From assembly GCA_003427395.1 (NCBI GenBank), contig BFEA01000004.1, positions 697,874-761,873 of the forward strand: 64,000 bases of DNA, written 5' to 3'. Each line of letters begins with the position of its first letter. Position 1 is the first letter of the stretch. The notes beneath the pieces are model-generated. The model did no database searches. It saw nothing but the letters and a program-made list of their open reading frames with translations, and was not told the origin of the DNA. Positions 1,820 to 58,528 of the stretch are shown here, one piece after another. A program made the translations under genes and the position numbers. Source of the stretch: Chara braunii (Eukaryota; Plantae; Charophyceae).

Positions 1820-2373
1820 ATCAATCAATCAATCAATCAACCAATCAATCAATCAACCAATCAAACCTTTTTTCTTTTCAAGTTTTTTGTTTATTTATTT
1901 TTAAATTATATATCTTCATTTTTCTAAAAACACCTTATACCCCTGCAAAAAACAGAAATTCATTTCTAAAGCATACAGGTGAACTCAGGGACCATATATC
2001 TGATGATAAAAAATGACAAAAAAAAAATCCAACTTTTCTTTATACATATATTTTTATTTTTATTTTAAATCGAATTTAGTTTTTGATTTTTAAAAAATCC
2101 GAAACAAAGTCGGATTCCAAAAAAAAAAAAAAAGGGTTGTAGGGCTTAAAATTCCCTACAACCCCATATATATATATATATATATATGTATTGTCAAATA
2201 GAACTGCCCGGTAAACCGTAGGCAGAGAGGGATATATATATATATATATATTTTTTTAACTTATTATTTAATTCAGGAAAATTCTGGTAAAATCGGGTCG
2301 GCTGCGGATGCGGACCCGTCTGCATCCGCCATCCGAGATCGGACCCGCGGACGCGTCCGCGGGTGTTTCATAG
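1762..2373 (-). mobile_element. Third, diverged member of the CTATG-TIR family (other end probably in the gap)
   Basis: Minus-strand start CTATGAAACACCCGCGG, then hammerhead fragment, (TA)n, GGGGTTGTAGGG..CCCTACAACCC hairpin, AT-rich block, (TTGA)n and (GT)n, in the same order as the 15.2-kb copy. Confidence 0.62.
2190..2232 (-). mobile_element. 3'-terminal fragment of the hammerhead repeat
   Basis: Reverse complement CCCTCTCTGCCTACGGTTTACCGGGCAGTTCTATTTGACAAT, flanked on both sides by (TA)n. Confidence 0.72.
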
Positions 2374-3031
2374 GTCCTGTACAACAAACATAGAGTGCGA
2401 GGTGAATGCACGCACACCAGTGAAGTAGTAGCACGGGCACTGCGTTGTGTGCCCATGCGCCTGTTGCTCGCTCGTTGTGAACGGGTGCACGATGCATAGC
2501 GCAGGGCACCGCATGGCCCGCCACATGTATGTGTTAGACCCTTGGTGGTAATGAAGATGTTTCTATGGAGCGTGTTATGTTGTCTTTTCTCTATCCTCTT
2601 TGTGGAATACACCGTTATGAGGGACTTGTGATTCATAGCCATGAATGGTCAGAACGTTAGGGTCGGACAATCTATCGTTAAACTGTCATTTCTGGCATCA
2701 GTCAACCATAGTGCAATGCAACGACAAAAAAAAAAGAAAGAAAAGATTGGACTGTTTGTTGGAGACTTTTATTTTATGAGTAGGAGCCAAACCTCGTTGG
2801 ATCTATGGGTTTTGGGTTTAATTAATGTAACGGTAGTTTCTGCATTGCGAGACAACGGCGCCTGTGAGCGCCACAGAGTTCCAAATTCGCAGGAATAACA
2901 GTTGACTGCAATCTGAACGCAATGCAGTTTGAAACTGCAAAACAAACAGGTACCGGTAGCGGTACCGGTCCTGCCAGTTCAACAATTGGCAAAAATGGGA
3001 GGTACTGGTACCGGTACCGTACGTTTCCCCA

Positions 3032-3185
3032 GGGGTGTGGCCTAGGCATCTCGGCAGTGGCCCAGCCACTGGCGTGGCCTAGACATCTTAGCCATGGCCC
3101 AGCCAGAGGTGTGGCCTACACATCTCGGTCGTGGCCCAGCCACGGGTGTGGCCTAGACACCTCGGTCGTGGCCCAGCCACGGGCG
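3032..3185. repeat. ~37-bp tandem repeat x4
   Basis: GGGTGTGGCCTAGACATCTCGGTCGTGGCCCAGCCAC units. Confidence 0.85.
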
Positions 3186-4110
3186 TGCATTAAAAAAAAA
3201 AAAAAAAAAAAGTCGCAGACGGAAAAAAAAATTAAGTCGCAGATGTGGAAAAACAAACAAACACGAGTGGCCGCCTGATTTTGCCACTTCCGAACTTCCA
3301 ACGGCTAGAAGTGCACAAACTGTTCTGTTTTTGCAGTTTCTAACTGCCATCGGCCCAGACCTGCAGTGCCCTGCCATTCCCGTGAATTCGGAATTGTGCA
3401 CCAGTCACTTGCGCAGCTATGAGTAGGAGCCAAACCTCATTGGATCTGTGGGATTTGGGGTTAATTAATGCTATGGTAGTTTCTCAAGTTTCGTACTGGC
3501 AGATGTATGGTCAATGGTGATTGTACAACCATCTATCTATTGTCTGTTTGTAGGCAACTAAATATCTGTGGGCAGGGACTTGCCACAACAGAGAAACTGG
3601 GGGGATGGTCCCATTCATCCTGGGGGCATACTCATAACAGGGCTTCGCTGGATGTATATGACCACTTTTCGACCCAGCCTGAATGCACCTGACTGCAATG
3701 AAGTCCACAGGGAAATGAAAAAGTCGTAGTGTGAGTAAGCCCTGATTCTTTCTTTCTGGCCGCTGATCTTCATACTCTATAGCGGAATTGGGTTAAGGTA
3801 AATTGTCTGCCTTCCAAGTAGGGGGTATGGGTCCGATCACAGCAGCCCACGTGGAAGAGCAGTAGTGGCTACTATCCATATCTAACAAAGAGCATCAGGT
3901 GGGACCAACATATCCTCTCCCCAAATGCTTGGGGCATGAAGACGCAGACCCCACCGTGGTGATCGTCCGCCCATAAATGATGAAAAAGAAGGTAAAAGTA
4001 AAAGAAAAAAAGAAAAAACAGGGTGGCATGACCTATCTTTTTTCTTCTCCCTCCCTGTCTCGATCTCTCACAAAGGCGCTCTCAGTATGTAGCTCTGTGA
4101 TGGTATATAT

Positions 4111-4384
4111 CATAGTTGCGGCGCACCAGTGCGCAGTGCGGTGCGGGGGGGTGCGCACTGCGCTGTGCGCTGGAACGACAGCGCACGCACTGTGCGCCGT
4201 GCGCTGTGCGCAGTACGCAGTGCTGTCCGCTGTGCGCGGTGCGCGCGCTGAGGGAGTCGCACACTGTGCGCAAAAAAAANNNNNNNNNNNNNNNNNNNNN
4301 NNNNNNNNNNNNNNNNNNNNNNNNNNNNNNNNNNNNNNNNNNNNNNNNNNNNNNNNNNNNNNNNNNNNNNNNNNNNNNNNNNNN

Positions 4385-4443
<59 letters not shown>

Positions 4444-5394
4444 ACAAAGGGTCCCCTTCTCGTCAATTCGAGGCGCCCTGCAGGTACCTCGAATGGCTCC
4501 TACAATACATGTGGAGCCATTAAGGGCCAGCTTAAATGAGAAGGATGGCCTCATCACGAGTGGCAGAGATGTGGGCAGACCACCAATATATGCTGTGGAT
4601 TCGAGTTCAGGGCTGTAGCTCGGCAGTATGGGTCACCAATTCAGCTAGACCCTGTTCGTGTCTCCACGTGATTCTTAGGGCCTCCCTCCACCACTCACCA
4701 AATGTTTATAATATTTGTAGAATGAATCTTCTGCTGAAACATGGAACCACACACAGCCATATGCTATGTCTCTTGTGCATTTGGTGAGTAGTGGAGCAGG
4801 CCCCACTGGACGTATTCGTAAGAAAACAAAAACAAAAAAACGAGAGAGCCACGGGCATCTTCATCCTAACCCATAACTGTCGACATGCGGACCTGAACGC
4901 CAATCTTCAGCATATATTGGTGGTCGGCTGACACTGAATACCCAATTTGCGACTTCTGCGAAGCTTCGCGGGGCATGTCGTTATTAGGCGACTACCCCTT
5001 CTTGCGAACTGACCCCACTAATGTGTGGGGTTTGCAGAAGGCAGCCGGAAGGACAGGTCTCATACCCCGCCTAAAACAAAGTTGGAACGAGCCCTATTTT
5101 GTGCCTCGACATTCGAAACTTTTTGGGGAAGGGCCTGCGCAATTCCAATTTTCAGCAGCCCTTACCCAAAAGAAAAGATCGGGCCATGGGCGCGGCCGGT
5201 TTGTGAACTTGCGCTGTGAGTTTAACATTTTTGCCGAGTTGGGGGCCCTAAGAAATTAGAAGACCCCTACTTTTTTTTCTTTTTTTTTTGACCTAATTTT
5301 TCAAGTGCGCTGTGCTTCGGTGCGCTGTGCGGTGCGCGGCGCGACGTGCGCAAACCGTGCGCAAACCGGCGCCCCGACGTGCGCCGCAACTATG
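4111..5394. mobile_element. Non-autonomous TIR element with CATAG termini and 8-bp TSD (P-like or hAT-like)
   Basis: TIR CATAGTTGCGGCGCAC / GTGCGCCGCAACTATG; TSD GTATATAT at 4103-4110 and 5395-5402; GTGCGC-rich subterminal repeats; nested MITE inside. Confidence 0.82.
4678..4803. mobile_element. MITE family B copy nested in the CATAG element
   Basis: TTA|GGGCCTCCCTCCACCACTCACCA ... TGGTGAGTAGTGGAGCAGGCCC. Confidence 0.72.
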
Positions 5395-5826
5395 GTATAT
5401 ATATAACATATGACTGCACCGGTAATTTCTGCCCCACAAGACATAGACTGTAGCTTTACTGTTGCGATCGTACAAGTAGCAATGAGGGACCGCCAACTTG
5501 AACTACACAATGCTCAAGCAGGTGAGTCGTTTCATCCACCATCTCACATTTTTGCCTGCATTGTACACGGATCTGGCACTTACATGTCCATTGCACATGC
5601 CTCTGTCTACTGGGAGTTGCGGAACAACGACACCAGGGTCCATACCATGACTGATGTTGCCAATTTCTTACAGAACGATGCTGTTTTCTTGCCAGACTGA
5701 ACCGTTTGCACACTCTTTTATCTCGAAGATCATTTCTCGGCCCCTGTACCGCAAAAGGATAATGTATCAACACTCCGCGACCTTCCCCTTTGCACAGCTT
5801 TAGCTTACAGATAGGTGACTATATGT

Positions 5827-5938
5827 ATTGTTATAGAGAGCTGCTCGGTGAACCGTAGGCAGAGAGGGAGAAGAGGACTACAAAGGAGGGGATGTGACAG
5901 ACTTCTCCGTCAGAGTTCCACTGACTCATCAGGAGGCT
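5827..5938 (-). mobile_element. Hammerhead-repeat copy, 5'-truncated and diverged
   Basis: Reverse complement reads AGCCTCCTGATGAGTCAGTGGAACTCTGACGGAG...CTGCCTACGGTTCACCGAGCAG; the GAAA core is mutated; TA-rich flanks. Confidence 0.75.
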
Positions 5939-6553
5939 AGTATACAAGCTACTGATGGAGCCCCTGCGATGGGGGTGGAACAGTCCTCTGGGTGTAGCTG
6001 TTCATGCAAACGTCTTTGCACTACTGTATGCACATGTGTCTGCGGATCCAGTTGTTCACTCAACAAGAATGTAGAACATTTTTCTCTGTCCGTGTAAAAA
6101 AACACAAATAAGAGTTAACAAGTGATATGTTTGTACCCGTGAAAAACCGTTGTGTTCACCCTCCTGACGAGTGACTGGTGGTGAAAGTCCAATGAAAGTC
6201 TAGCATGATCATGGTTTTTGCTGGCTTTATTGAACGGTAACACACACAATGAAAAATAGCAGTGTTAATAGCACTGAGACTAATGTTTTGCCCCAAATAC
6301 AGGTATGATGACCGTGGGTTCAATTAGTTGGAAGACAGTAGTCATAACAGTTGGTATCTATGCCCATGCTTAGATCCGATGCAATTCTTTACCCCCTGAA
6401 CCCCCCGCCAATTGTCCATGAGCAGTTGGGCCGAACAGAGGGCACAGAAATATCGGGTGCCTGGTTTGGTGCAAAGGCAGATACCAGCAGCACCACAACT
6501 CTGGTCAGTATCAGGGCAAAACACACGCACACACACACACACACACACGCGCG

Positions 6554-6608
<55 letters not shown>

Positions 6609-7448
6609 NNNNNNNNNNNNNNNNNNNNNNNNNNNNNNNNNNNNNNNNNNNNNNNNNNNNNNNNNNNNNNNNNNNNNNNNNNNNNNNNNNNNNNNNNNNN
6701 NNNNNNNNNNNNNNNNNNNNNNNNNNNNNNNNNNNNNNNNNNNNNNNNNNNNNNNNNNNNNNNNNNNNNNNNNNNNNNNNNNNNNNNNNNNNNNNNNNNN
6801 NNNNNNNNNNNNNNNNNNNNNNNNNNNNNNNNNNNNNNNNNNNNNNNNNNNNNNNNNNNNNNNNNNNNNNNNNNNNNNNNNNNNNNNNNNNNNNNNNNNN
6901 NNNNNNNNNNNNNNNNNNNNNNNNNNNNNNNNNNNNNNNNNNNNNNNNNNNNNNNNNNNNNNNNNNNNNNNNNNNNNNNNNNNNNNNNNNNNNNNNNNNN
7001 NNNNNNNNNNNNNNNNNNNNNNNNNNNNNNNNNNNNNNNNNNNNNNNNNNNNNNNNNNNNNNNNNNNNNNNNNNNNNNNNNNNNNNNNNNNNNNNNNNNN
7101 NNNNNNNNNNNNNNNNNNNNNNNNNNNNNNNNNNNNNNNNNNNNNNNNNNNNNNNNNNNNNNNNNNNNNNNNNNNNNNNNNNNNNNNNNNNNNNNNNNNN
7201 NNNNNNNNNNNNNNNNNNNNNNNNNNNNNNNNNNNNNNNNNNNNNNNNNNNNNNNNNNNNNNNNNNNNNNNNNNNNNNNNNNNNNNNNNNNNNNNNNNNN
7301 NNNNNNNNNNNNNNNNNNNNNNNNNNNNNNNNNNNNNNNNNNNNNNNNNNNNNNNNNNNNNNNNNNNNNNNNNNNNNNNNNNNNNNNNNNNNNNNNNNNN
7401 NNNNNNNNNNNNNNNNNNNNNNNNNNNNNNNNNNNNNNNNNNNNNNNN

Positions 7449-7624
7449 GTTTACCGGGCAGTTCTATTTGACGATATATATATATATATATTTTCAGCCT
7501 CCTGATGAGTCGGTGAAACTCCAACGAAACAGTTTGTCACAGCCCCTCGTTTGTTGTCCTCTTCTCTCTCTCTGCCCACGGTTTACCGGGCAGTTCTATT
7601 TGTGACGATATATATCGTCAAATA

Positions 7625-7627
<3 letters not shown>
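7449..7627 (+). mobile_element. Hammerhead-repeat cluster: 3' fragment, (TA)n, 5'-truncated copy (7493-7608), inverted 3' tip
   Basis: TTCAGCCTCCTGATGAGTCGGTGAAACTCCAACGAAACAGTTTG...GGTTTACCGGGCAGTTCTATTTGTGACGATATA; lacks the 5' arms of stems I and III; flanked by (TA)n. Confidence 0.8.
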
Positions 7628-7677
<50 letters not shown>

Positions 7678-9189
7678 TGTGTGTGTGAGAGACACAATTC
7701 CAAAATTGTTTTTCTTGTGTGATTGAAGTTATATGTGAGTGTGTTTCGAGTTCTTTCGTTCATGAACTTGTTACTGATTTGATGATTTGTCACTGTCAAG
7801 ATTACTTATCACTTGTTTGGTTGAGTATTATGTCAGAGCCACTGGAAGTGTAGAAAGTTCAGCTTCTATGCTGATTTCCGAGCAGATGGGGAACTTCTCA
7901 GCAACCATGAAATTCTTAAACTTCAATACAAGTTGTGCCGAAATCTGTTTGTATCATATTCTGCGTTTGTATAGGCTAGCATACTTGCCCAACCAGAATC
8001 TTTGTCAATGCTATGGACCGAACCGCCCTGGGTATTGGAGTGTTTTTTCTTAAACTGACGGTGAGATATCTCTGTGCCTAGAGATATGCCTAAATCCGGC
8101 CAGACCTTTTATTTTGGCAATGTCTCACTTGAGCGGAGGTGAAGGTAGATGGGGGTTGAGGGGGTTGAAGAGTCAAAGGGTGTGAGATGAAGTCATTTTT
8201 TGTTTTGCTTTTTATGTCATATTTAATAATAAATATTCAGCATGACTTCTGGCCAAAAGTTGTCTACAACATTAAGGGCACAAAAGTGGATGAGTTTTTT
8301 TTTTTTGGGGGGGGCACCTATTTTCGGAGAGGTTCGCCAGACCATTCAGACCAAGCATTGTGCAGATGGCCCGGCTGATAGCCTAGGCATCGCTTGTTTT
8401 GTTTGATGGTATCTATGAAATTGGTGGGTGTATTGTTTCAGTGATTAAGGTTCTTTGTTGGGTGTCACTAGCAAATACTGCTCAGGCTTGTTGTCATAGT
8501 ACCGAGTAGAAAACCCACCATTGTGGTGCCCTCTGGTATTACAGTGAGGATCAATACTACGAGTAGGGTTACTTGCCAAGTTGGTACCCATGCCAATACT
8601 AGTACGAGTCCAACCGCGTCGGGTATCTGTGTGGGTCATCCTGGTCTTTTCTTTTCCTAGCGGTCGGCTATTTGATCCCCTAGAGATGTGCCCAAATCTA
8701 ACCTCAATGTCTTACTTGTGAGGATTTGAGGGGTGTAGATGGGGTTTGCAGGGGTTGAAAATGACTCAGTGTGAGATGATTTTATTTTATTTTTCCTTCT
8801 TTTTTTTCAGTGATTTTCAGCATGATTCAAGTTGTTAGTCAGAATATATGAAAGCACTTGAGTTGCAAGGGATGAAAATGGTTAAGTTTTTTTTTTTTTT
8901 TTTTTCCCTTGATTGTTTTCAACCTTATCAAACCCTTGTCCAAGTAGGCCATTTAGTGGGTGCCACTAGAAAAAAATATTTTTTGTCACGGTACCGAGGT
9001 GGACACTCACTGTTGAGATGCCATTGAGTAGGGTGCAACGAGGATCTGAGTGATACAAGGCAAAGTAGATCTCTAGCATTCATGTGAACCAGATGAACAA
9101 CTTAACCCTTGTGAAACTTACTAAAAAAATATTTAAAAAATCATGCATAGTTTTTTTTTCAACATAAAAAAATCAGTTCATTTTTTCTG

Positions 9190-9710
9190 GAAAAATGAAC
9201 TTTCAGTTTAATTTCAAGCAAACTAAACGAATTCACTTTATCTTTTCCTTAAAGACAAACTTTCAGTTAAATTTCCCGTTCAGATATGACATTTCAGTTT
9301 ACCTTTCCGATATGACATTTCAGTTTACCTTTCAGATATGACATTTCAGTTTACCTTTCCGTTCATAAATTGCATTTCAGTTGAACTTTCCAGCAATAAA
9401 TCACATTTCCGTTTAAGTATCTGCCCAGAGGGAACATTTCAGTTTAATATCAGTTATATTTTCCAGTCATCTTAAACTGAAACAAAAATATTTCAGTTTT
9501 ATTTCATGCAAGACATATTATTTCAGTTTGTATTAAACTGAAATGTTATGTTGGAATTTTCAAGATTGTTCCCGAACTTTCAGACAAACAATACTTTTCA
9601 GTTTATATAGAAAAATGATCTCTATAAACTGAAAATCTCTTGATAAACTGAAAGTTTTTCAAAGTAGCATGAAAATATTTGAGTTAGCCTTTCCTTCAAC
9701 TGAACTTTTA
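9190..9710. repeat. AT-rich array of TTTCAGTTT/AAACTGAAA motifs
   Basis: Many direct copies followed by inverted copies, suggestive of transposon subterminal repeats. Confidence 0.6.
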
Positions 9711-10581
9711 TGTCTTGAATTTTTCTGTTGCAGCCGCCCGACACCGTGCTACACAGCTGCATAACATAGCTTTTTTTTTTTTCTTTTTTTTTTGACTTCT
9801 TTTTTCTTCTTTGGCTGGGACCTCCAAGTTTTGCACGGCCAGGCCGGACGGGCAAATAGGGTGACCCGGGACTGGATGGTAGCCTAGATAGAATACCATT
9901 TTTTCTGCAATGTCCTGGTGCGGTTCTGATGCGGAGACTCTGGGACTGCACTTGGAGGCACCTCACTGGTTTGCACTCAGCTGGCCCTGGGATTGGCCGG
10001 TCCCCTAAAACTACACCATGTTCTTCTCGCAAACTCTTTTTGCCTTTCACTACCTTCCTACCACTACTCCTAAGAATATATACAGGGGACCCCTGCAAGC
10101 ATAGGGCCTCGCAAACGGGGTAAATCATGTCGCCCCCCGCCCCAACAGCGGTAGTCAGAGATCGGGTGACTGTGATACTAGTCCTCCGGATACCCCAATC
10201 GGTATTAGCAGGGTCTATGAGGACCAAGACGGGTGTGAGTGCGAGCGTGAGTGGGTTGTGCGTGCTGTGTGGGAGAGTGTTGGCCAGAGCCTCTGCTGCT
10301 ACTCCGAGTCAATCAGGGGTGGGCGACGATGAGAGAGCGCAGCTACTGGCAAAATTGCTCGGTCATTGCTTAGGTTTTTGGAATATGCCGGATCCGATGA
10401 CTGATTTTCAACAAAAAAAAAAAAAATCCAACCAGCCGAAAAGCGATGTTGTGGCACAAAAGATGCATAGCGGGTATAGAAAATGCGAGAATGGAAGGAA
10501 AGGAAGTAATGGACACGCTAAACATTTTTTCCAAACGGAAACACAGTGCTCGACGAGTCAATACCACAACTACACTCTTAA

Positions 10582-10794
10582 ACCACCAGTACTTGGCCCA
10601 TACATCAGCCGCGGTGCTGCCGCATTAAGTTTGGCGTTAACACGCCGTGCCTTTAGGACTTCGGGGTACAGGACCACAATGGATGGAGGTGCCAGCCAAA
10701 ATGAAAACCAAACGTCCGCGCTGGCGGTTGGTCAAAACTTGGTGCGCCTTTGCTCTGAGGCTCGGCATCGATAGCTGGGCCAAGTAGTGTTGGT
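10582..10794. mobile_element. TIR family C, TTAA TSD (piggyBac/Kolobok-like)
   Basis: TTAA|ACCACCAGTACTTGGCCCA ... TGGGCCAAGTAGTGTTGGT|TTAA. Confidence 0.75.
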
Positions 10795-12099
10795 TTAACC
10801 ATGCATCAGAAATGAGATATAAAAAGAAAAAAAAAAGTTTGTAAATTATCGATGGACTAGGCTGGAGATGCAATTGGGGCAAGGCTGGGAAAGGTGGTAC
10901 TTTGTCCAGGAGGACGAGGTGATGAGACACCCCTCAAAAAGGGTTTTCATCTTGTTTCTCATGAATGGTTGGAATCGCCGCCACCTGATGCTCGCCTCCA
11001 GCCTCCGGCGGTCTTTGCAGATTTCTTCCCCATGTTCAGAATTGGCTGGTTTAAATGGAATGGTTTGGGTTTGATGGTTAACTTGAAGAAGGCAAGGGGG
11101 TTGAGTTTGTGAAGGAAGACAGGGGGAGACATCCAGACACAATCCTTAGAGGAGGGTTTTGGCCAGCTAGTGTCACTGCTGGCTCTGGCGGCCATTATTG
11201 GGCTGAAGAGCAGCACAACAACCTGAGCAATTTGGACATCTCAGATGTATATGGGACTCTGGACCCGATTTCCAGCAGGTGCCACTCCCTACCAATGATA
11301 GACTGAAGTCCAAAACCAAACTGCTAGGTGCTGGGGGCTCATATCACCACTCCTAGATAGGCATCTGCCTTTGAGGGTTCTTAGGTAAGGGGGAGAGGTT
11401 ACCATTGTTGAGTTTCTCCCGACTGATGCTGGTCCGGAAGCGGTAAGTATTCAACCTCCTTTTTTTTTTTTTTTTTTTTTTTTGGTATTCAACCTCCTGA
11501 TTGGGAGACCTTGTTTTTTTTCTGTTTTTTTGTTTAACCACTTGCTCCAATATATTCGTCGGAACGACATGTGCCGCGAAACGGGCCCAGCATCCCAAAA
11601 CGATCAACCGAAGGTCATCCATTAGTTGACCCTCCCATTCGTTGTGATCCTCGAGTGTGCCATACGGTCCTTGGCCCATCCCTGCAGCCGGAGACTCCCA
11701 TCGGTACCCAGTCGCCGCAGTATGCCGGATTCCCGAAAGACCACCCCCCGCCCTTAGCCTCGGAAGGCTTTCATGACCGGCCAGTGTAGACCGGGCGGTC
11801 ACCGGGGCATGAGGCCTGGGGGTTTCTGACACTCAGGACACCCGGGCAGGGGAAAAGCAATAGAAAAAGAAGAAAAGAATCATGCAGGGGGGGGGCTCCA
11901 CCCTCCGCAAGAGGGCGAGAGGAACCCAAATCTTGGGTAACCAGGCACCCGCGGAAATGGCCTTGCCCTTTACTCCTTTTTGCCTTATCAGCTGCTTTCC
12001 CCCCCCCTTTTTTTGTCGATTGCGAGACTTTCTGCTCTCTTCAGGACCAGACACCTAGGGTCGATGTATGGGACGCTGTACCCGATTTCCAGCACTTAA

Positions 12100-12297
12100 A
12101 CCACCAGTACTTGGCCCAGATATCGGCCGCGACGCTTTCCCGTTAATGCGCCGCGCCTTTAGGGCTTCGGTGTACCGGACCACGATGCCTGGAAGCGCCA
12201 GCCAAAAGAAAACTGAAAGTACCACGGCGCTTCGGCAAAAATTGGTGCGCAGCCCGTTTTCACGGTCGGCATCGATAGCTGGGCCAAGTACTGATCT
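12100..12297. mobile_element. TIR family C copy
   Basis: TTAA|ACCACCAGTACTTGGCCCAG ... CGATAGCTGGGCCAAGTACTG; right end decayed. Confidence 0.68.
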
Positions 12298-12728
12298 TTC
12301 AACACTGCCCACCAATAGAGTGGAGTCCCAAACCAAGGTGTTAGACTTGGCCGCTTGTATCACGACTCCTACCACCCTTCCAAAGGAAATTTCCAAAAAG
12401 AAGTTTTCAAAAAGAAAAAAAAAAAACAAGAACAAAAACTTGCAGAAAGGTCATTGCCCCCTAGCAAGCATACTGGGAAGTCATTGCTGCTTTGAAGCCG
12501 GTAGTGTTGTCATAGTAAACATATCCACAGGCCAGTGAGCTGGGGCAACGGAGCAAGCACTGGGATATCACATGACAAGGGATGTCCAAGCCTCAGTCTT
12601 AACAAACACAAAAGTCTTGATTGCGTCGTATGGCCCATCGTGATCGGAGGAAGAGACACGACCCATCTTTCCTCCGCAGTGTCTTTCCGCTCGATATCAT
12701 ATAAAGCAGAAGGGGGTGGAGATGTCTT

Positions 12729-12998
12729 CTATAATAGAATGTCATCGATGGATCGATATGTGAATGCGTAAGCTTTGCGATGCACGCAGATGTCGCTGAC
12801 GCAGTTCGCCAATGAACTGTGCTCCATCCGAATACAGTGCGAGATTGGTCCGGCATTAGTGCCCATCAGGATACCACCCACCTGATGGCACAGAGTGCAA
12901 TTCTTTGTAGAGAGGCAAGGACTAGAGACCACAAACTGCGGATGCCATTCTATTTCCAACACCGAAAGGGTGTCCGAGCCTTGTGAAGCAACCCACAC
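12729..12998 (-). pseudogene. Degenerate Penelope-like reverse transcriptase fragment
   Basis: QVGGILMGTNAGP (cf. QxxGIPMGTNxAP) and FTYRSIDDIL (cf. RYIDD) in one frame. Confidence 0.7.
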
Positions 12999-13333
12999 CC
13001 CGAGGTCATGTATATTTGCGCTGCTGACCTACTACCCTGTCGACTACGTGCCAAAGCATAATCATATGTGTGCTTCACGAACAGCATTTAAGGCATCGCT
13101 AAGAATCCTATTGTACCAACTGGCCCGGCTCAGTTGGTACGCCCCTGAACTGTTGCACTACTACAGACCGGTGTTCGAACTCCACTGCACTAGATGAATA
13201 AAAAATTGTGACTTCAACAAAAAAAAAAAAAAAAAAAAAAAATCCTATTGTTTGGCAGGCTACTGTACACTGATGAATACTCCATAATCATTTTCAGTAC
13301 TGAATTCATTATCCGTGAATTAACATACATGGA

Positions 13334-13418
13334 CGGATGGAGAGGGATTCGAACCCCCGATATTTTGTAATATGTCAGTTTTCAAGACTGGTACCTTCAA
13401 CCACTCAGACATCCATCC
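13334..13418 (-). tRNA. trnS: tRNA-Ser(UGA), plant mitochondrial type; probable NUMT
   Basis: GGATGGATGTCTGAGTGGTTGAAGGTACCAGTCTTGAAAACTGA...GGGGGTTCGAATCCCTCTCCATCCG; 7-bp acceptor stem, TGA anticodon, long variable arm; resembles plant mitochondrial trnS(uga). Confidence 0.8.
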
Positions 13419-15343
13419 AAAGCAAAGACGCCCCTTACGCGTGGCGTTGCGCCTCGAACGCAATGTGCATTCTGCTCGAGATCTAAAATCACTTTCTCAG
13501 CACTCTGCACAATCCAGCAACAACATTCACCACCTTCATAATGACACTCATTATCCTTTCTGCGGAGAGACCTGATCACACCATGTAGAGCACTGAGCTA
13601 AGTACTCGAGAGGCCACTGTTAATCCTTGCAAGAGGCTTATGTGGGGGGCGGGGGAAGAGGAGGATTATGGACATCTGACACTGAAGGTCAGTGGAGATC
13701 GGGAAAGGTTGTTTCGTTGAGTGACTCCAAGATGCACCAAAGAGCAGGTGGACATAGTGCGCTTTGGGTACAAAGTAGAGAGAAATGAAGGTTGGCAGTG
13801 TGCTGATAGCCCCATCGACGCGGGCCATCCTTGATTGAAAAGTGTCTGGGGAATCTGGGGATTGACAATGCTGGTGCTGATGCATGATTGACAATGCTGA
13901 TGCTGGATGCTGTGCAAGGTTTATTCGGGCGATAATTGTACGTGTGCAATGCATTGGCAGGAGATATTACCATGATGTGCAAGGTTTTCATCGGCTGGTA
14001 CTACGACAAATTGCTGTGTTGGCACCTCACGAGGCAGCCTGAGAAGGTCCCTGGTACATTTGACCTAGAGAAATTCTGTTAGGATCTTAACAGAATTGCT
14101 GCAAAACATCTACTACACAGCTGCAACAGACTGTCAGCAATTACAGGCTCGATTGCACGCTGATGCAATGGCTGGCATAAACATGGAAATACGATCATCC
14201 AAGGCACGTTTCAGTGCTTTCAGCACATCCACATCCACGACGTCAACATTGACGCAGTACTTTCGAGTCTTCGAAGCGAAGGAGAGCCCACAAACGAGGG
14301 TCTTGTAAAATGATTTGGTCCACTGTGGCCACATGACCATCAACAATGTCAGCACACCATGCAAATAATTATCCACAGGATAAAAGTCCGGAGGAGGCAC
14401 ACTGCTCGTTATTTGGAGTGCCACTTTTTGTGGCCATGGCGGAATATTTGTTCACTTGCCGAATTGGACGCGCAATTGGCTGGTGCTGTCTTTTACCACA
14501 CACACTTATTTCTCTAACAGCCGGCTGTGGATGTAATTCAACAACCTTCGGCAATCGTAGGACGCCCCATACTTCTGTAGTGCGAGCAACCCAACCCATG
14601 TGAACATGCTTAATGAAATTTCAAATTTCAAATTTCAAATTTAAGAACACCTTGTGCTTAAGAACACCTTGTACTTGTGGAGCAAGCAACCTGATCCATA
14701 TTCACAAACACATGAAATTTGAGACCGGAGCCTGTACTTGTCATATGCAGGACCGGAATTCGGCTGCCAGTGGTGAGAATATTGCAAACCACAGATCATG
14801 CGCTCCAATTGACACATGTTTGGTGTAAGCTCAACATCAGCAGCCATTGCAATAAGCAAAGAGCGCCAGGCAAGCATGACTTGGGAGAGTGAGAGATGGA
14901 TTGCCATTCTGAATTAGCTGCTAGGATCAGCATGCGGTGTAGGGCGGAACGCACAACATAAAATGGACAAGAGCGCCAGGCAAGCATGACTTTGGGGCGA
15001 ACAGTGGAGGGCGGCCTTAGGCATCGCAAACATATCCACCCGCTGCCGGACGAAAACCCTTCACGAGGAGCGGCCTCATGTGTGAACCGTTGCGGATTGA
15101 TGCAGCCATCAGCATTAGATAGAGATGGTGGTGTATACATTCCGGGAGCTGCAATCGTATAGAAAAGCAGTAAACATGTGCATGTGCATTCTGAGAATGA
15201 TTTTTTCCCTGGTTGCTGGTTCTTACCCTGGCCCTATGTGACACCCGCGGCCTAGGCCGCAGGCAATTCGGCCCCTGCGGCCGAAGAGGTCGGCCACAGC
15301 CGCAGCAGCCGCCAGGCCCTACTGCGGCCCAATTTTTTTTACA

Positions 15344-15503
15344 GTGTAATCAGTGAGGGGATTCTGCAGACTGTTGAGGGTTCAGCCTCCTGATGAGTCG
15401 GTGAAGCTCCGACGAAACAGTTTGTCACAGCCCCTCGTTTGTTGTCCTCTTCTCTCTCTCTGCCTACGGTTTACCGGGCAGTTCTGTTTGTGACGAATAG
15501 GAC
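15344..15503 (+). mobile_element. Hammerhead-containing short repeat (retrozyme-like), longest copy
   Basis: Hammerhead followed by a CT-rich tract and a 3' hairpin CTGCC..CGGTTTACCG..GGCAG, ending in (TA)n; homologous to the copies at 2.2, 5.9, 7.5 and 19.7 kb; 5' boundary approximate. Confidence 0.75.
15366..15425 (+). ncRNA. Type III hammerhead ribozyme (structurally complete)
   Basis: Stem III GCAGACTGT/ACAGTTTGT; GTT cleavage triplet (15373-15375); stem I GAGG/CCTC with loop GTTCAG; core CTGATGA (15390-15396); stem II GTCGG/CCGAC with loop TGAAGCT; core GAAA (15414-15417). Confidence 0.88.
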
Positions 15504-15894
15504 ATATATATATGGGGTTGTAGGGTTTTAAAAGCCCTACAGCCCCTTTTTTTTTTTTGAATTTGACTTCATTCAAGTTCATTTACAATTTGTAAAAAAT
15601 GAAAAACGAAAATCGGTTACAAAATAAATAAAAATAAAAAATAAAAGAAAAGCAGGAATATTACATACATATACATATTTTTTCTTTCACGAGTCCTTAA
15701 AATTTTGCCAAAGTACTTGCTTTTCTTCTTCTTCTTCTTCTTCTTCTGTGCTGTTTGATTGATTGATTGATTGATTATTGATTGATTAGAAAGAAAAAAA
15801 AAATTGAACACGCTAGTTCGTGTGTGTGTGTGTGTGTGGGCACGCACTTGTTTGTGCACGCTTCTGTGTATGTGTGTGTCTCTCTGTGTGTGCA

Positions 15895-15928
<34 letters not shown>

Positions 15929-15942
15929 GTGTGGTGTGGTGT

Positions 15943-15977
<35 letters not shown>

Positions 15978-18392
15978 CTGTGCGCGCGCGCATGTGTTTG
16001 TGCGCACACGTGTGTGCGTGTGTGTGTTTCCCCGTGTGTGTCCCCCGCATGACGGGTGGAGGGGAGGGAGGACCCCTCCCCCACCAATCAATCAATCAAA
16101 AAAACAATCAATTAATCGATGTTTTTTTATTTTAATTTTTTCTATTTTTTTGTCACACAACCTCCCCCCCCCCCAAATTTCCCTTTTTTTTTTATAGTGG
16201 CTTCCGGAGGGGGACGCCATGCGCAGGCAATGCGCGCGCCCCATTTTCAGGCGTGCGGCTCCGCCTGTGCATGGCGCGTAGCTGCCGGCCTCCTCAGCCG
16301 CAGGATCCACGGCCGTGGGGGTCACATAGCCCTGGCCATATACCCTCCCCCCCCCCCCCTCTCTCTCTCCCCGCATGGTTGGGTCTGTGGTAGGATTTGG
16401 GGAGGGATTTAGGGAGGCACAGTGGCAGACACCAGTTCTAACAAATAATGAAGACATCCAAACAGAGGGCAAAAGGAAACCAAAAACCAGTCGAATAGGT
16501 GAACCCGTGCCTGGTAGCAGTGCGGCGGGAAGAAGACGTTAGAACAAACAATAGACGCAAAACCCCCAAGGAATTGCTAAAAGACTTTCAAGGTCGACCT
16601 GAGAACAACTCCAGCAGACTTTCAACCACGGGCCACCTCTAAATAAACAAAAGATGCACCACCAAAACATACAAAGCAGATAACACCAAAGATGTCATTT
16701 CCACGTAGACTCCACACTGCTAACCTAACCTCCGTCTAATCTCGGACCTCTGATCGAAGCTCCAACTCCACTATCACTGCCAAAAATCGGATAAAAACGA
16801 AAAACCAAAAATCGGATAAAAACGAAAAACCAAAAATCGGATAAAAACGAAAAAGATTAACTAGCAAAACCGGTCAAAAGAAGAAGAGAGCAACAATCAG
16901 AACACAGAGAGCACCTACACCTCCTCACAAGTGATATCCCTCCGTCCGAGCTGACATCACATTCGGAGCCCCGCAGAATGCTTCAGAAACTAAAACACAA
17001 CAACAATACACCATAAGTTGGAGACACTTGTTGCACTTCCTTATAGATAGACACAAGACTCCTTCCTGATTATGATTCAGAAGGACATATCTTTCACAAG
17101 GTAGCAGCCATCGAGCAACCAAGAGTCTAGTTCGCATGACCACAGGACATGCCCATTTTGTCGACAACAGACTTGCGATCCATAAATCCCAGGCAGGAGT
17201 GCCCCACAGCCTCTGTTTTAAAAAGCACCAGCACACGACACATCGGCCCGCGGGTGTCAGCAGGAAACCTGGCACCACTTTTGAGGCCGCCGATTTTTTT
17301 TTTTTAACAGCGCCCCACGCCGCGCAGTCCCTCCGAGTTTTGCTAGTGGCGACAAAAAACTTTCTGCAAGGCTGCCGCGGCCGTGTACTTCCGGTTTAAC
17401 ACTCGGCATGCCCGTGCAAAGGAGGATTCCCGCCAAAATTATTTCTATATGATAGGGGTATGGCCAATCCGAAGAGAGGGCAAGATCCACCATCGGCCCA
17501 CCAACAGCTGGCATAGGGACCGTGTACTTGCAGTTTAACTCATTCAAGTCTGACAGCAGGCAGGCATCAGTCAAAGATAAATCACAGCACCATAACACAC
17601 CAGTCTCGCATCCTATACCAGCAACAATGCACTCGATGCTTTTCTCATTCCGCACCCTGTACATGTACCTTGCAGATCAGGTGAGTGAGACCTGTTCCTT
17701 CTCCTTTCCCCTCACGTTCACGTCCTTTCATGAACAGTCGTACGCCCTAAACCGCAAGATACAATGTTGTTTGTGAAGATCCCCTAATAATCCGCAAGGA
17801 CTATCTACAAGGTGTGAAGGAGGAAAACTGGTGGGCACATCATTGGACTAGAATGTGTGGCTGGTATGTGCTGCTGACCCATGCTGCTAAGACATCAACA
17901 GAGGGGATCACATCGATCTGGAGAAGTACCTACAAGCAGACACACACAGCGGCACCACAGACCGAGGATAAAGCCGTCGAACGAACAACCCCCCCTATCA
18001 AAATGACTACGAACCTCCCCTCCGCATCCTCTGGCTAGAAGAAGAGGTGAGGGCAAGGCTAGAAGAAGAGGTGAGGGCAAGTGCAGCACACACGCAACAA
18101 CAGCCACCCGACAGCAATGCTCTCTCGCAGTTGGTTGATGGCTCTATTGTTATCAGCCCGTCCAACATGAGACATGTTGCGTTCATGCAAATTGGCTCTT
18201 TTAAATTCCCATAAGTTGGGCTTATTCAAACCTTGCTCCTGGAAAAGCAATGCGTAAAAAAAAAGAAAAAAAAACACTGAAAGCAGCGACAGCACATTTC
18301 GCATCTCCAAAAGATGCCCTCAAAAGTCCCAAAAACGCAAACCTAAGAAAAGAATACCAATCAAGCAACAACATGTACGACCCATCCCTCGC

Positions 18393-18536
18393 TCAGCACG
18401 AGCAACCCCCGGCCTTGTTTTCCGCCTGTGGTGGGTTAACCGTTGGCGTCAGTTTCACATCTACAAGGTCCTCCGTCTTCGTCGCCGACACGGCTTCCAT
18501 TCCTGGCAAGGCTGCTGCAATCTTCCGAAACAATGC
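18393..18536 (-). CDS. RAB6: Rab6/RabH1 exon 6 (terminal)
   Basis: ggcag| acceptor; ALFRKIAAALPGMEAVSATKTEDLVDVKLTPTVNPPQAENKAGGCSC* with a CxC prenylation motif; the six exons total 648 nt = 215 aa + stop. Confidence 0.95.
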   Translation of the reverse strand, partial: ALFRKIAAALPGMEAVSATKTEDLVDVKLTPTVNPPQAENKAGGCSC

Positions 18537-19014
18537 CTGCCAGGGAAAATATGAACAAAAACAAAAACAATAAATCCAATGTCTGCCAGGCCTGCAGGCC
18601 CAGGTGTACTGGTGGGTTTCATGCCCCACACCGATGCTGATGACAAACCATTCACGCCACTATGCATCCAACATCTGCAGACAGATAGATGATTGATGCA
18701 AATGCCAGAATAGGAAGCCTTTTTGGCCACATACTGCTCGATGAAAAAAGAAAACAATGACCTTTTTGGCCACATACTGCTCGATGAAAACACAAGAAAA
18801 AATGATAGTCCATGCGCAGAAGTAGATCATCAATAGACAACGAAAAATAAACTGGTGTTTTCACTTGCATGAACACCTGGTCATTATCCCTGTATCTCAT
18901 CATGAAGTTGCCCCCACGTAGAGCTATAATGACCAGGCGGGCGTCCTATTCGTCGGAGACAACAACAGCCCTCTGTCTCATCTACTGTAGCTAGATGGAT
19001 TGATGCATCAGAAC

Positions 19015-20419
19015 CTATGTGACACCTGCAGCCTAGGCCGCAGGCAAACCGGATGCTGCGGCCGGAAAAGTCGATCGCGGCTGCGCCCAACAAGGCCTAC
19101 CTTGCGGCCCGGTTTTTCGGGTGTTTTTTTTGGGTCAAAAAATAAGTAATATATTGTCACACTGTGAATCAGAGCGCAGAAGCGAAAAAAAGAAGAAGAA
19201 AATAAGAGAAAAGAAAAAAGGGGGAGAAGAAGAGGTAAGGAAAGCTCCACCTGTTCATAACCTCTTACGTACAAGGCCAGCCACGTGGATGACAGGTTGA
19301 GCGCTGGCTGCCCCCATCCCCGTGTGTCATAAAGACCCACTTGCACGCAGCCAAAAGGCAAAAAGGTAAAGAAAAGGCGGAGGAAACCAAACCTCACAGA
19401 AGAAGAAAGCCTATTAAACAGACGAAGCAAGTACACATCCCACAGATAATCCAATTACCATCCCACAGAACATATTTTCTTTTTTCTTTTTTCTTTTTTC
19501 TTTTTTCTCAGGTTTCTTTTTTTGTGTTTTTCTTTCCTCGGTTTCTTTTTTTAACTTTTTACTCGGTTTTCTTTTTTTAACTGTTTCTTCTACACTTCAT
19601 CTGTCACCCCCTCGGCAGATAGGACAACTACGGTGAGGATGACGGGGATGTTCACAGGGATACCCAAGGAGAGTTGCGTTAGTGCAGCTATATAGCCTCC
19701 TGATGAGTCGGTGAAACTCCGACGCAACACTTCCCCTCGTTTGTTGTCCTCTTCTCCCTCTCTGCCTACGGTTTAACGGGCAGCTCTGTTTGACGATATA
19801 TATACGGGTTGCAGGGTTTGCAAAACCCTATAGCCCATTTTTTTGTTTCTGAATTTGACTTCATTTGCGATTTTTAAAAAATGAAAAACGAAAATCGGTT
19901 AAAAAGAACAAAATAAAAATAAATAAAAGAAAAGCAGGATTTTTTTTTTCACATTTTTTTCATGACTGATAGTCCTAAAAAGGAAAGCAGGTAATTTTTT
20001 CTCTTCTTCTTCTTCTTCTTCTTCTTTGCTGTTTTTTTTTCCTTCTTCTTTGCTGTTTCTTCTTCTTCTTCTTCTTCTTCTTCCTCTTCCTCTTTGCTGT
20101 TTTTTTCGTTTTCTTATTCTTCTTCTTCTTCCTTGCTATTTTTGTTCTCCATCTTCTTCTTCTTCTTCTCCAATTTCTTCTTCTTTTTGGTCTTCTTTTT
20201 CTTCTTTGTTTCTTCATCTTCTTCTTCCATTTGTTCTTCTTGTTGTTCTTTGCTGTTTCATTTTTTTTGTGGTTCTTCTTCTTCTTCTTGTTCTTTTTTC
20301 CACGACCTCCTTCAGGCAATTCAGCAGCGGTGGTCAGACACAGATAGAGAGAGAGAGAGGGCTGCCACACGGCCGCTCGCCAGCAATCGGCTGCCAAGGG
20401 GCAGCCCGACAGTGGTCCA

Positions 20420-20463
<44 letters not shown>

Positions 20464-20855
20464 GCCACGTGGCAGCTCGTTAGAAATCGAGCTGCCAAGT
20501 GGCAGCCCGGCAGTAGAGAGAGAGAGAGACCTGCCTCACAGAATTGTTTTTTTTTTTTTGCCAAATGGGGGGTGCGCAACACCGTCAACATGTACCAACC
20601 CCTCACCATTTCAAATTCACTATTTGGGGGGGGGTCGTCTTTTTTTTTAAACCCCTATGAAATTTCTTTTTTCCCCAAAAACTTCCATTTTTGGGATGGG
20701 AGCCAGGGGCCGACGTGCGCAGGCGGCGCGTGACTCCACCTGGCCGTGGCTCGGCCACACAAAAAATCGTTCGCGCGGCCTAGGCCACAGGGTTGCGGCC
20801 AGCCTCCTCGGCCACAGCCGAGGCCGCGGGATCCGAGTCTGAGGGTCCCACGTAG
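19015..20855 (+). mobile_element. Second member of the CTATGTG-TIR family, in Rab6 intron 5
   Basis: Starts CTATGTGACACCTGCAGCCTAGGCCGCAGG and ends GGGTCCCACGTAG; TSD ATCAGAAC/ATCACAAC (7 of 8 match); shares the hairpin and AT-rich block with the 15.2-kb copy. Confidence 0.78.
19694..19797 (+). mobile_element. Hammerhead-repeat copy, 5'-truncated, core mutated
   Basis: AGCCTCCTGATGAGTCGGTGAAACTCCGACGCAAC...CTGCCTACGGTTTAACGGGCAG...TGACGATATATA, between TA tracts. Confidence 0.78.
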
Positions 20856-20875: not shown

Positions 20876-21021
20876 CGAGTACGGTCATACTTCGGGTAAT
20901 GCACTCGATCCCATCCGAACTTGGAAGCCAAGTGCCGTTGGGCCGGAATAGTACTACTGGGATGGGTGACCTCCTGGGAAGTCCCGGTGCTGTACCTTAA
21001 CAACAACAGAAGAAAAAAAAA
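20876..21021 (+). pseudogene. 5S rRNA-derived retrocopy with A-rich tail (Rab6 intron 5, antisense)
   Basis: GTACGGTCATAC...GATCCCATCCGAACT..GAAGCCAAG...AGTACTACTGGGATGGGTGACCTCCTGGGAAGTCCCGGTGCTGTACCTT followed by AACAACAACAGAAGAAAAAAAAA; isolated copy with a 3-nt duplication in the internal control region. Confidence 0.85.
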
Positions 21022-57736: not shown

Positions 57737-57913
57737 ACAGCAAAGTCACCAGTGGCCATGCTTTCAACCAGCGATACCCCGACTTATTGCTAATACTCAC
57801 AGGATTGCGGCTTCTCCGCTTATTCAGCAGTTTGAGAATCCTCAGTAGGTCTGGTTCCTGGCAGATCTTAAGATCAGGACAGTCAAAATAAGCATCCCCC
57901 CTCTAAACACCTT

Positions 57914-58354: not shown

Positions 58355-58528
58355 GCGCAGCCAGAAGGGTAAGTAAGCCCGTCCCTATGCAATGTCCCCC
58401 CTTAGGCAAGCCAAAAGAACAATCAAGACCTTGATCTTATCCATCAACACCTGCAGCGAACTATCAACAGAACATTGCAAGGCACTAATGCGCCTTGATG
58501 CTCTTTTTAAGGAGCGAAAGCTTCCTAA

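Follow-up and report, generated by a model that had tools for sequence, protein, structure and literature searches.

What kind of mobile element multiplies a hammerhead ribozyme in the genome of Chara braunii, and does self-cleavage of its RNA decide where new copies begin? The questions are raised by the window, by which we mean the whole 64-kb stretch of DNA that was analysed, in which six copies or fragments of a short unit occur together with one 17-nt inverted stub (Table 1). The initial annotation had described at least six copies with a common 3' end and differing 5' ends. BLAST, alignment and a pattern search bear this out, placing the repeat at all six positions, and the pattern search for the 3' hairpin gave five matches in the window with none expected. 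We consider it likely that the copies belong to a very abundant, short, non-coding retroelement family that carries a type III hammerhead.

Table 1. Copies of the hammerhead unit and associated features, in window coordinates.
Feature	Position	Strand	Details
Longest window copy	15337-15497	+	Found by BLAST; 5'-truncated by ~55-75 nt against the full-length copies L004:24412-24620 and L008:22471-22563; short TA run after it
Complete type III hammerhead	15368-15423	+	Rfam RF00008, 43.8 bits; E 1e-8 locally, 2.9e-6 window-wide
5'-truncated copy	7493-7611	+	Begins TTCAGCC (15381 equivalent); 96.6% identity to the 15337 copy; a TA run at either end
3'-end fragment	7449-7476	+	5' part hidden by assembly gap 6609-7448
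Inverted 17-nt stub of the 3' end	7617-7633	-	From sequence reading, motif scan and flank table; missed by the initial annotation
5'-truncated copy	19694-19798	+	Begins AGCC (15384 equivalent); 87% identity; inside host element B
Older 5'-truncated copy	5826-5938	-	Begins AGCC; 85% identity; degenerate core; outside any MITE
44-nt 3' fragment	2189-2232	-	Begins at 15453 equivalent; (TA)n on both sides; inside host element C
Host element A, non-autonomous TIR DNA transposon	15234-16329	+	TIR CTATGTGAC.. at both ends; holds the 15337 copy in its internal TA run
Host element B, same family as A	19015-20855	+	TSD ATCAGAAC / ATCACAAC (7/8); inside it are a Y-family insertion and the 19694 copy
Host element C, related subfamily	2033-2373	-	Left TIR region from 2373 downward, hairpin-plus-T-rich segment 2174-2033; holds the 2189-2232 fragment
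Second TA-tailed short repeat, Y	19149-19693	-	Head-to-head with the 19694 copy

The unit opens with a 5' leader of ~85-110 nt and continues with the internal type III hammerhead, followed by a CT-rich spacer and a 3' hairpin (CTGCC..GGCAG), after which ..TTTG(TG)ACGATA leads into a (TA)n run. Its full length is ~210-235 nt, a value taken from two copies, one of them gap-containing, and the true 5' end could lie further upstream. These two copies (L004:24412-24620 and L008:22471 onward) have TA runs on both sides and start 55-75 nt upstream of the 15337 copy. The cut site is therefore internal to the unit, since full-length copies begin 85-110 nt upstream of it. Walking upstream from the longest copies, which the initial annotation had proposed in order to see whether the unit is the 3' end of an autonomous element, extends the unit by ~55-75 nt and ends at TA runs in these two copies.

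The ribozyme had been recognized correctly. The cmscan alignment, over model positions 1-54, gives a type III topology, in which helix III is open and loops close the other two helices, and the minimum free-energy fold of the window unit is a three-helix junction. The RF00008 scores of 43.8 bits in the window and 42.1 bits in L004 are below the gathering threshold of 48.5, with E-values of 1e-8 to 3e-6. Helix III pairs 15366-15374 with 15417-25, helix I, which is short at 4 bp, pairs 15376-79 with 15386-89, and helix II pairs 15397-01 with 15409-13. The core consists of CUGAUGA (15390-96) and GAAA (15414-17), and the predicted cut lies between 15375 and 15376, preceded by GUU (H at position 17, not G). 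Only the 15337 copy, one of the six in the window, retains a complete intact ribozyme; the 19694 copy, for example, has lost 8 nt internally and its GAAA is mutated. Across the family, variants at a frequency of at least 5% avoid the 11 core positions except the unconstrained N7 (15394) and the cut-site base, an avoidance that is suggestive at p about 0.07 by our own estimate. The cut-site base changes from U to C or A and never to G, variants in helix III keep its pairing, and a sister family in L014 carries a compensatory C-G to U-A change in this helix. Separately, a metagenome core scan returned two phage-like contigs (L001 and L002) with an unrelated type III hammerhead, whose shared helix II is coincidental and which are not from Chara.

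Abundance was estimated from sequencing reads placed on window positions 15180-15680 (four runs in total, DNA and RNA) and from 335 kb of additional Chara DNA. Summed DNA contig depth is ~8 in unique flank, 9-14 thousand in the TIR of the host transposon and 1.3-2.3 million in the hammerhead unit, and 19 copies were found in ~360 kb of sampled Chara DNA. Together these place the copy number roughly at the order of 1e5. The family is transcribed with a strand bias. In one oligo-dT RNA run 5,967 of 8.9 million reads (~0.07%) fall on the stretch, dividing 3.4:1 between the strands downstream of the cut and ~1:1 upstream, the strand label of the library having been deduced from the read asymmetry and not from the record.

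The description of a short non-coding retroelement that has no LTR, poly(A) or Pol III box holds, and a primer-binding site is absent as well. No direct repeats flank any copy (units of 44-209 nt), and when the 5' regions of the full-length copies were scanned against Rfam by E-value, no Pol III-type head of tRNA, 5S or 7SL RNA origin emerged. The tRNA-Met primer-binding motif, allowing up to two mismatches, occurs three times in the window against 4.3 expected and at no unit, and no polypurine tract was seen at the units by eye. With neither flanking repeats nor a primer-binding site above chance level, the unit is indeed unlike the LTR-flanked retrozymes of angiosperms. The accompanying claim that terminal inverted repeats are lacking is true of the unit itself, but three copies (15337, 19694 and 2232) lie inside a TIR element with 8-bp target duplications.

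The 3' end is constant. In all four runs the top loose end behind the unit falls at 15490, with the consensus ..GTTTG|ACGATATATATA. A TA run precedes 12 of the 13 informative 5' junctions; the 5' flank of the 15337 copy is a T run and the flanks of the 5938 copy are short and TA-like only. The view that every copy abuts TA tracts is right as to insertion at TA repeats generally, with these two copies as caveats. Target-primed reverse transcription is consistent with the constant 3' end, the variable 5' ends and the flanking TA, and to this extent the earlier proposal of target-primed insertion into (TA)n stands, with the priming step itself inferred.

Does the ribozyme set the 5' end? The three window copies that were said to begin 5-8 nt past the cut do so, copy 7493 at the equivalent of 15381 and copies 19694 and 5938 at that of 15384. 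Among 16 mapped 5' ends, four fall at 15381-15384; the others are at 15391, ~15410, 15426-15428 (three copies), 15453, 15471 and ~15483 or lie upstream of the cut. Starts away from the cut either group around loop II and the base of helix III or show no clustering. Among the 5' junctions in RNA reads, 15407 has the strongest support, followed by 15381, 15386 and 15384, and six of the 11 best-supported 5' loose ends in three RNA runs fall at 15379-15387. The starts just past the cut form a real hot zone, which is located in loop I of the ribozyme. Stalling of the reverse transcriptase at the folded ribozyme explains the hot spots as well as cleavage does.

The initial annotation went further and held that copies start past the cut since self-cleaved RNA is the template, which as stated is unsupported. 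In its strict form, with self-cleaved RNA as the only template, new copies would begin at or just past the cut and longer ones would be rare exceptions. The hot zone, seen both in the sampled copies and in the RNA loose ends, agrees with this, as do several tandem joints at 15380-15383 and an RNA depth upstream of the cut that is, on one strand, ~3 times lower than the other strand predicts. We nevertheless judge the strict form improbable. The full-length, TA-flanked copies reach far upstream of the cut, and a conserved upstream loose-end consensus at 15338/15339 is present in ~150 DNA contigs. DNA contig depth is level across the cut (1.29 M at 15375 and 1.27 M at 15385), although this measure does not vary along a contig and could mask a step. 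Neither copies nor tandem joints have a start precisely at 15376, the RNA junction with most support is elsewhere, and the three starts at 15426-28 correspond to the base of helix III, which would be absent from a cleaved RNA. Nor do the RNA reads support cleavage in vivo, because no molecule starts pile up at 15376. The classical retrozyme cycle, in which a tandem transcript is cut at two ribozymes, ligated into a circle and reverse transcribed by rolling circle into arrays, would account for TA-spaced tandems. These occur at 7449/7493 in the window, at L004:13260-13551 and in the reads, where position 15490 is joined through TA spacers to 15381, 15383, 15393, 15400, 15408 and 15423 in DNA and RNA runs alike. 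Most copies are solitary, however, and the arrays consist of unequal 5'-truncated members (71, 71 and 121 nt in L004) with differing spacers, so that serial insertion into earlier TA tails fits better than rolling-circle copying. The cut site is missing from most array members, every RNA back-joint is also found in DNA, and the fold of the unit is not unusually stable against shuffled sequences (z -1.0 and +0.3), lacking the stability of viroid-like RNA. We regard this cycle as an even less probable source of the family.

Two other readings make the unit part of a larger element. Three of the six window copies occupy an equivalent place, in one orientation, in three copies of a DNA transposon, in each case directly upstream of (TA)n and a hairpin GGGGTTGTAGGG.., as would be expected if the unit were an internal cassette spreading along with the transposon. 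Element A of this transposon has a perfect 8-bp target duplication (CCCTGGCC at 15226-33 and 16330-37, 8/8). From the length of the duplication we infer a hAT-type non-autonomous element, and no transposase for it was seen. The cassette reading is close to refuted. In DNA contigs the unit is 100-1000 times commoner than the transposon, and copies 5826-5938 and 7493-7611 and those in L004, L013 and L014 lie outside it. The 5' junctions of the internal copies differ (15337, 15384 and 15453), each beside a TA or T run, similarity is 87-97% among the units against 75-80% among the transposon arms, and one orientation for all three copies has a chance of 0.25. The three copies are secondary insertions into the internal TA run of the transposon. 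Alternatively, the unit might be merely the 5'-truncated 3' tail, a pseudo-LTR piece, of an autonomous Penelope-like element such as the hammerhead-bearing Chlamys-2_cBra or PLE-X. According to Craig et al. (2021; PMC8557442), Chlamys families of C. braunii bear a 'canonical 3'-HHR', are very numerous, insert at microsatellites and leave 5'-truncated copies as well as partial ones in tandem or inverted arrangement, and the hammerhead unit shows a matching insertion signature. We sampled four Penelope-like families, namely that of the window element (1,092-bp pLTRs), L003/L005/L006, the CCHC-type L011/L012 and L014, and none of them has either the unit or the TGACGATA(TA)n tail. In the one sampled family with a hammerhead, L014, the pLTRs contain a minimal type I motif whose sequence is unrelated, and two copies of the unit stop at TA runs ~210-235 nt from the 3' end. 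An origin as a Penelope tail is in our view unlikely. Protein and profile searches and inspection of loci yielded no related hammerhead-bearing autonomous partner among the four families and, as far as these comparisons go, the enzyme donor is not one of them. The Penelope-like element of the window itself (54765-62057), whose protein homologues are all from C. braunii, was considered as the mobilizer; it shares no sequence, hammerhead core or TA tail with the unit and the idea is unsupported, although the element might still act in trans.

We return to a free-standing retroelement inserting at TA repeats. Nicked TA-repeat DNA would prime the reverse transcription from which new copies arise, giving the constant 3' end, the variable 5' truncation and TA on both sides, and re-targeting of earlier TA tails would produce tandem or inverted partial copies. 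The ribozyme most likely trims the element RNA from an upstream transcript. Those copies that start 2-11 nt past the cut may have been templated by the 3' cleavage product, and the reverse transcriptase may also stop at the hairpins of the ribozyme. The ribozyme probably matters for the source RNAs, since it is intact in the bulk of the family, and the full-length copies show that cleavage is not an obligatory step. A comparable role is played by the HDV-like ribozyme of non-LTR retrotransposons, which releases the element RNA from co-transcribed upstream sequence ahead of target-primed reverse transcription. HDV-like ribozymes cut at their own 5' edge, and the copy retains the whole ribozyme. 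As noted in PMC5680766 (its ref. 32), they occur at the 5' end of R2, RTE and L1Tc elements. Copies made from a cut type III hammerhead RNA would, in contrast, be ribozyme-dead, because one strand of helix III is lost.

In eukaryotic genomes, type III hammerheads have to our knowledge been linked until now to LTR retrozymes of flowering plants, and non-LTR retrozymes to type I hammerheads of animals. The Chara family has features of each. Plant LTR retrozymes are likewise non-autonomous elements of the green lineage with a type III hammerhead; they differ in having two ~350-bp LTRs, each with a ribozyme, a tRNA-Met primer-binding site, a polypurine tract, 4-bp target duplications, circular RNAs of 600-1000 nt and mobilization by Gypsy elements (Cervera et al., 2016; PMC4918200), none of which was seen for the Chara family. 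Metazoan non-LTR retrozymes, of 170-400 nt and up to 1e5 copies with type I hammerheads (Cervera & de la Pena, 2020; PMC7229834; Li et al., 2026, preprint 10.64898/2026.07.22.740005), resemble it in being short, non-coding, highly repeated and transcribed, in lacking LTRs, a primer-binding site and a polypurine tract and in sharing their genome with Penelope-like elements; they are often tandem, and tandem copies occur in Chara too. They form regular tandem monomers and have a kinship to Penelope-like pseudo-LTRs, whereas the Chara family is type III, mostly dispersed and 5'-truncated, has a (TA)n tail, resides in a streptophyte alga and matches none of the four sampled Penelope-like families. 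The Chlamys and PLE-X elements share the genome and the insertion habits of the unit, and some have hammerheads; they are coding, 3-8 kb long and usually target (CA)n or (C)n (PMC8557442), whereas the unit is short, non-coding and TA-targeting.

A full-text literature search for Chara braunii and hammerhead gave, among the matches listed, descriptions of coding Penelope-like elements only. A transcribed, non-LTR, TA-targeting type III family of ~1e5 copies would be intermediate between plant and animal retrozymes, and it offers a tractable case for asking whether the hammerhead serves retroelements in 5' processing or circle formation or simply hitch-hikes. We put forward tentatively, as a possibility that we hold to be less than probable, that the family represents a third kind of retrozyme, non-LTR like those of animals and with the plant-type (type III) hammerhead, whose ribozyme-trimmed RNA uses its (TA)n tail for priming at TA microsatellites, with an enzyme that does not come from a hammerhead-bearing Penelope element. 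Such a state, in a streptophyte alga, could have given rise to plant LTR retrozymes and perhaps to viroid-like hammerhead RNAs.

The family also shapes the genome locally, by seeding and lengthening TA microsatellites and by nesting in other transposons. Copies 7449 and 7493 lie in tandem, and the start of the former is no real truncation because an assembly gap cuts it. The window contains two gaps, 4280-4384 and 6609-7448, and no conclusion rests on continuity across either. The stub at 7617-7633 is tail-to-tail with copy 7493, forming a palindrome around a TA run. The neighbouring Y repeat has only the terminal ..TGTGACAATATA(TA)n in common with the hammerhead unit.

The hammerhead unit, a short non-coding retroelement, represents a family that is real, abundant and transcribed. 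Copies were located by a BLAST search of the window with the longest unit, by scanning it for the 3' hairpin pattern (five matches, none expected) and by alignment; the repeat is present at all six places named in the initial annotation, and an inverted stub was found beyond them. Every window copy shares the 3' end described there, with the hairpin CTGCC..GGCAG, ..TTTG(TG)ACGATA and a TA run, and the 5' ends vary. That of the copy at 7449 is unreadable because an assembly gap (6609-7448; another lies at 4280-4384) cuts the copy. The initial observation is therefore confirmed, whereas the mechanism proposed with it is only partly supported.

Features of the window and of other sampled loci (L004, L011, L014); PLE, Penelope-like element; pLTR, pseudo-LTR
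Feature	Sequence	Position	Strand	Remarks
Unit copy, longest in window	window	15337-15497	+	BLAST, alignment
Unit copy	window	7493-7611	+	BLAST, alignment; 5' start TTCAGCC
Unit copy	window	7449-7476	+	BLAST; 5' end hidden by assembly gap
Unit copy	window	19694-19798	+	BLAST, alignment; 5' start AGCC
Unit copy	window	5826-5938	-	BLAST, alignment; 5' start AGCC
Unit fragment	window	2189-2232	-	BLAST, alignment; 5' start CCCTCTC
Inverted unit stub	window	7617-7633		17 nt
Transposon copy A	window	15234-16329		TSD CCCTGGCC
Transposon copy B	window	19015-20855		TSD ATCAGAAC / ATCACAAC
Transposon copy C	window	left end 2373	-
Y copy	window	19149-19693	-
Y copy	window	33906-33971	+
Y copy	window	25067-25130
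Y copies	L004	12330-12594 (including 12404-12594); 12974-13214; 13548-13591
Y copy	L011	4294-4546
PLE	window	54765-62057	-	GIY-YIG by Pfam
PLE	L014	gene 10001-13717; pLTRs 8641-9367 and 13883-14610		pLTRs 97.5% alike
tRNA-Ser(TGA) gene	window	13330-13419	-
5S rRNA gene	window	20877-20998	+	84 bits; starts 22 nt past right end of copy B
U6 snRNA gene	window	33069-33169	+	96.6 bits

Positions 15368-15423 match the Rfam type III hammerhead model over its full length at 43.8 bits, below the gathering score of 48.5, with E-values of 1e-8 (local search) and 2.9e-6 (whole window). The predicted fold is a three-way junction, with the cleavage site predicted between 15375 and 15376. In the window no other core is intact: each remaining copy is mutated, is missing the 5' helix III strand, or shows both defects. 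Of the family-wide variants that make up 5% or more of the reads or depth of one or more runs, none falls on the 11 conserved core positions; the CUGAUGA block contains a single variant, located at N7 (15394), a free position. At the cut site the base varies to C or A, never G, and pairing is preserved by all four helix III variants and by the one helix II variant. That the core is kept free of variants is suggestive only (chance p about 0.07 by our estimate).

The type III hammerhead is also used by other repeat families, with different sequence downstream. A sister family at L014:17036-17111 has the ribozyme in common with the unit and a different 3' part, and this 3' part also occurs among the DNA loose ends, behind 15419; in the alignment its helix III carries a double (compensatory) change from C-G to U-A, with GUC at the cut. 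A decayed copy of the same hammerhead, with different downstream sequence, lies at L010:8282-8336. In each of two metagenome contigs (L001:8195-8223, minus strand; L002:3461-3489, plus strand) a type III hammerhead occupies the intergenic space between short ORFs. It is identical base for base to the Chara family in helix II and loop II, most likely by chance.

Two copies outside the window reach further 5' than any within it. That at L004:24412-24620 spans 209 nt, with TA-rich flanks on both sides and a hammerhead of 42.1 bits. The copy at L008 reads (TA)27, a leader of about 75 nt upstream of the equivalent of 15339, an assembly gap and (TA)30. Since the same leader consensus lies upstream of 15338/15339 in about 150 DNA contigs, the longest window copy must itself be truncated. 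The full-length unit would measure about 210-235 nt. The initial annotation had copies start just after the cut; the longer L004 and L008 copies argue against this, placing the predicted cut 85-110 nt inside and not near the element start.

The 5' ends of 16 copies could be mapped in window numbering. Three lie within the leader (-75, -55 and -19) and the others at 15337, 15381 (two copies), 15384 (two), 15391, about 15410, 15426 (two), 15428, 15453, 15471 and about 15483. In raw RNA reads a junction with unrelated flank ending in TA has the strongest support at 15407 (362 reads), followed by 15381 (155), 15386 (144) and 15384 (129), and the top positions in two further RNA-type runs include 15379, 15382, 15387, 15400, 15410 and 15422. 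The zone 3-11 nt past the cut is reproducible, yet it is one of three, all of which match the ribozyme structure: loop I (15380-85), loop II (15402-08) and the 3' base of helix III (15423-28). The suggestion that self-cleaved RNA serves as template thus gains from the first zone and loses from the other two and from 15376 itself, where the 16 mapped copies and four runs show no copy start, joint or pile of read starts. DNA depth is equal across the cut (1.29 M versus 1.27 M); because contig depth does not vary along a contig, a step there could be blurred. In our reading, the folded ribozyme frequently halts the reverse transcriptase; self-cleavage may have affected some templates and is not required.

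We infer that copies are made by reverse transcription primed on TA-repeat DNA, because the 3' end is constant and the 5' ends variable, TA runs precede 12 of 13 informative 5' junctions and follow every 3' end, tandem pieces are unequal in length with TA spacers (L004:13260-13551, window 7449/7493 and joints in mapped reads) and inverted stubs sit head-to-head or tail-to-tail (L004:13211-13240, L004:24307-24401, window 7617-7633). These features fit insertion into (TA)n by target priming, as originally proposed. Older TA tails would be targeted again, giving nested copies.

Three window units lie inside copies of a non-autonomous TIR transposon (A, B and C), in each case with a TA run and the hairpin GGGGTTGTAGGG.. 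directly downstream; copy B additionally acquired a Y element, the second TA-tailed repeat. On one reading, the transposon would carry the unit as an internal cassette. Against this, the unit exceeds the transposon 100-1000-fold in abundance, is also present away from it, both in the window and at other loci, differs in 5' junction among the three internal copies, and is 87-97% alike between copies as against 75-80% for the transposon arms. The three internal units inserted secondarily into the TA run that belongs to the transposon itself.

Among the runs listed, the unit is present in 20 public runs from ten studies, four of which were mapped onto 15180-15680. Summed DNA contig depth, which is not equivalent to copy number, is about 8 for unique flank, 9-14 thousand for the neighbouring transposon's terminal repeat and 1.3-2.3 million for the unit. 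Independently of depth, 19 copies, whole or fragmentary, were counted across the roughly 360 kb of Chara DNA sampled (the window and loci L003-L014). The C. braunii genome is roughly 1.8 Gb, and both depth and count point to a copy number of the order of 1e5. In run X6, whose organism code differs (organism B), 81% of the unit's sampled words are present and the junctions follow the same pattern; a second species may also have the family, or the sample may carry a wrong label.

In one oligo-dT run 5,967 of 8.9 million examined reads map to 15180-15680, and 69% of these continue into unrelated sequence. First mates downstream of the cut number about 3,100 on the minus and about 930 on the plus strand; upstream they number 198-445 and 180-359, respectively. 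Assuming a library of the usual stranded type, the favoured strand is the ribozyme sense. The relative drop in sense signal upstream of the cut is consistent with self-cleavage, after which the 5' piece, lacking poly(A), would be lost, and also with truncated copies being transcribed preferentially in the sense direction.

Chlamys and PLE-X Penelope-like elements, some with 'canonical' hammerheads, are described in C. braunii (PMC8557442); among the features listed for them are that they target microsatellites, reach very high copy numbers and leave partial copies in tandem and inverted arrangement. We sampled four PLE families (the window PLE with L003/L005/L006, a divergent relative in L004, the CCHC-type L011/L012, and L014). 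In none does the unit or its tail occur, and none terminates at a TA run. The idea that the unit is the terminus of an autonomous element therefore finds no match among them. The window PLE has an N-terminal GIY-YIG domain (57914-58354), a 630-aa RT ORF (55844-57736) and 1,092 bp pLTRs that are 95% alike (62057-60966 and 55856-54765); its protein homologues are all from Chara braunii. It contains no hammerhead and no microsatellite flank, and there is no specific support for it as the mobiliser. Each pLTR of the L014 PLE bears a minimal type I hammerhead (9203-9231 and 14446-14474), unrelated in sequence to the type III unit and probably of the published 'canonical 3'-HHR' type.

In mode of working the nearest known elements are the animal non-LTR retrozymes (PMC7229834), linked to PLE pseudo-LTRs by a 2026 preprint (10.64898/2026.07.22.740005). 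Those carry type I hammerheads, whereas the Chara unit has type III, is mostly dispersed and 5'-truncated, ends in a TA tail and belongs to another host lineage. Plant LTR retrozymes (PMC4918200) share its ribozyme type, but their LTR, PBS, PPT and TSD features are all absent from the unit, which bears out the initial contrast with the LTR-flanked elements of angiosperms. The unit has no SINE head and no viroid-like stability. A full-text literature search returned no description of the family beyond the PLEs of Craig et al. 2021 (PMC8557442), which were compared by description.

In the Y repeat the end ..GCGCTCTGAT..TGTGACAATATA(TA)n is constant and the 5' ends vary. One Y 3' end carries, on its reverse strand (window 33947-33958, minus), an 11/12 match to a tRNA-Met PBS; such matches across the window total no more than chance level. 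Similarity between Y and the hammerhead unit is confined to the TA tail and the last dozen bases. The two nest in each other's TA runs and probably employ the same machinery.
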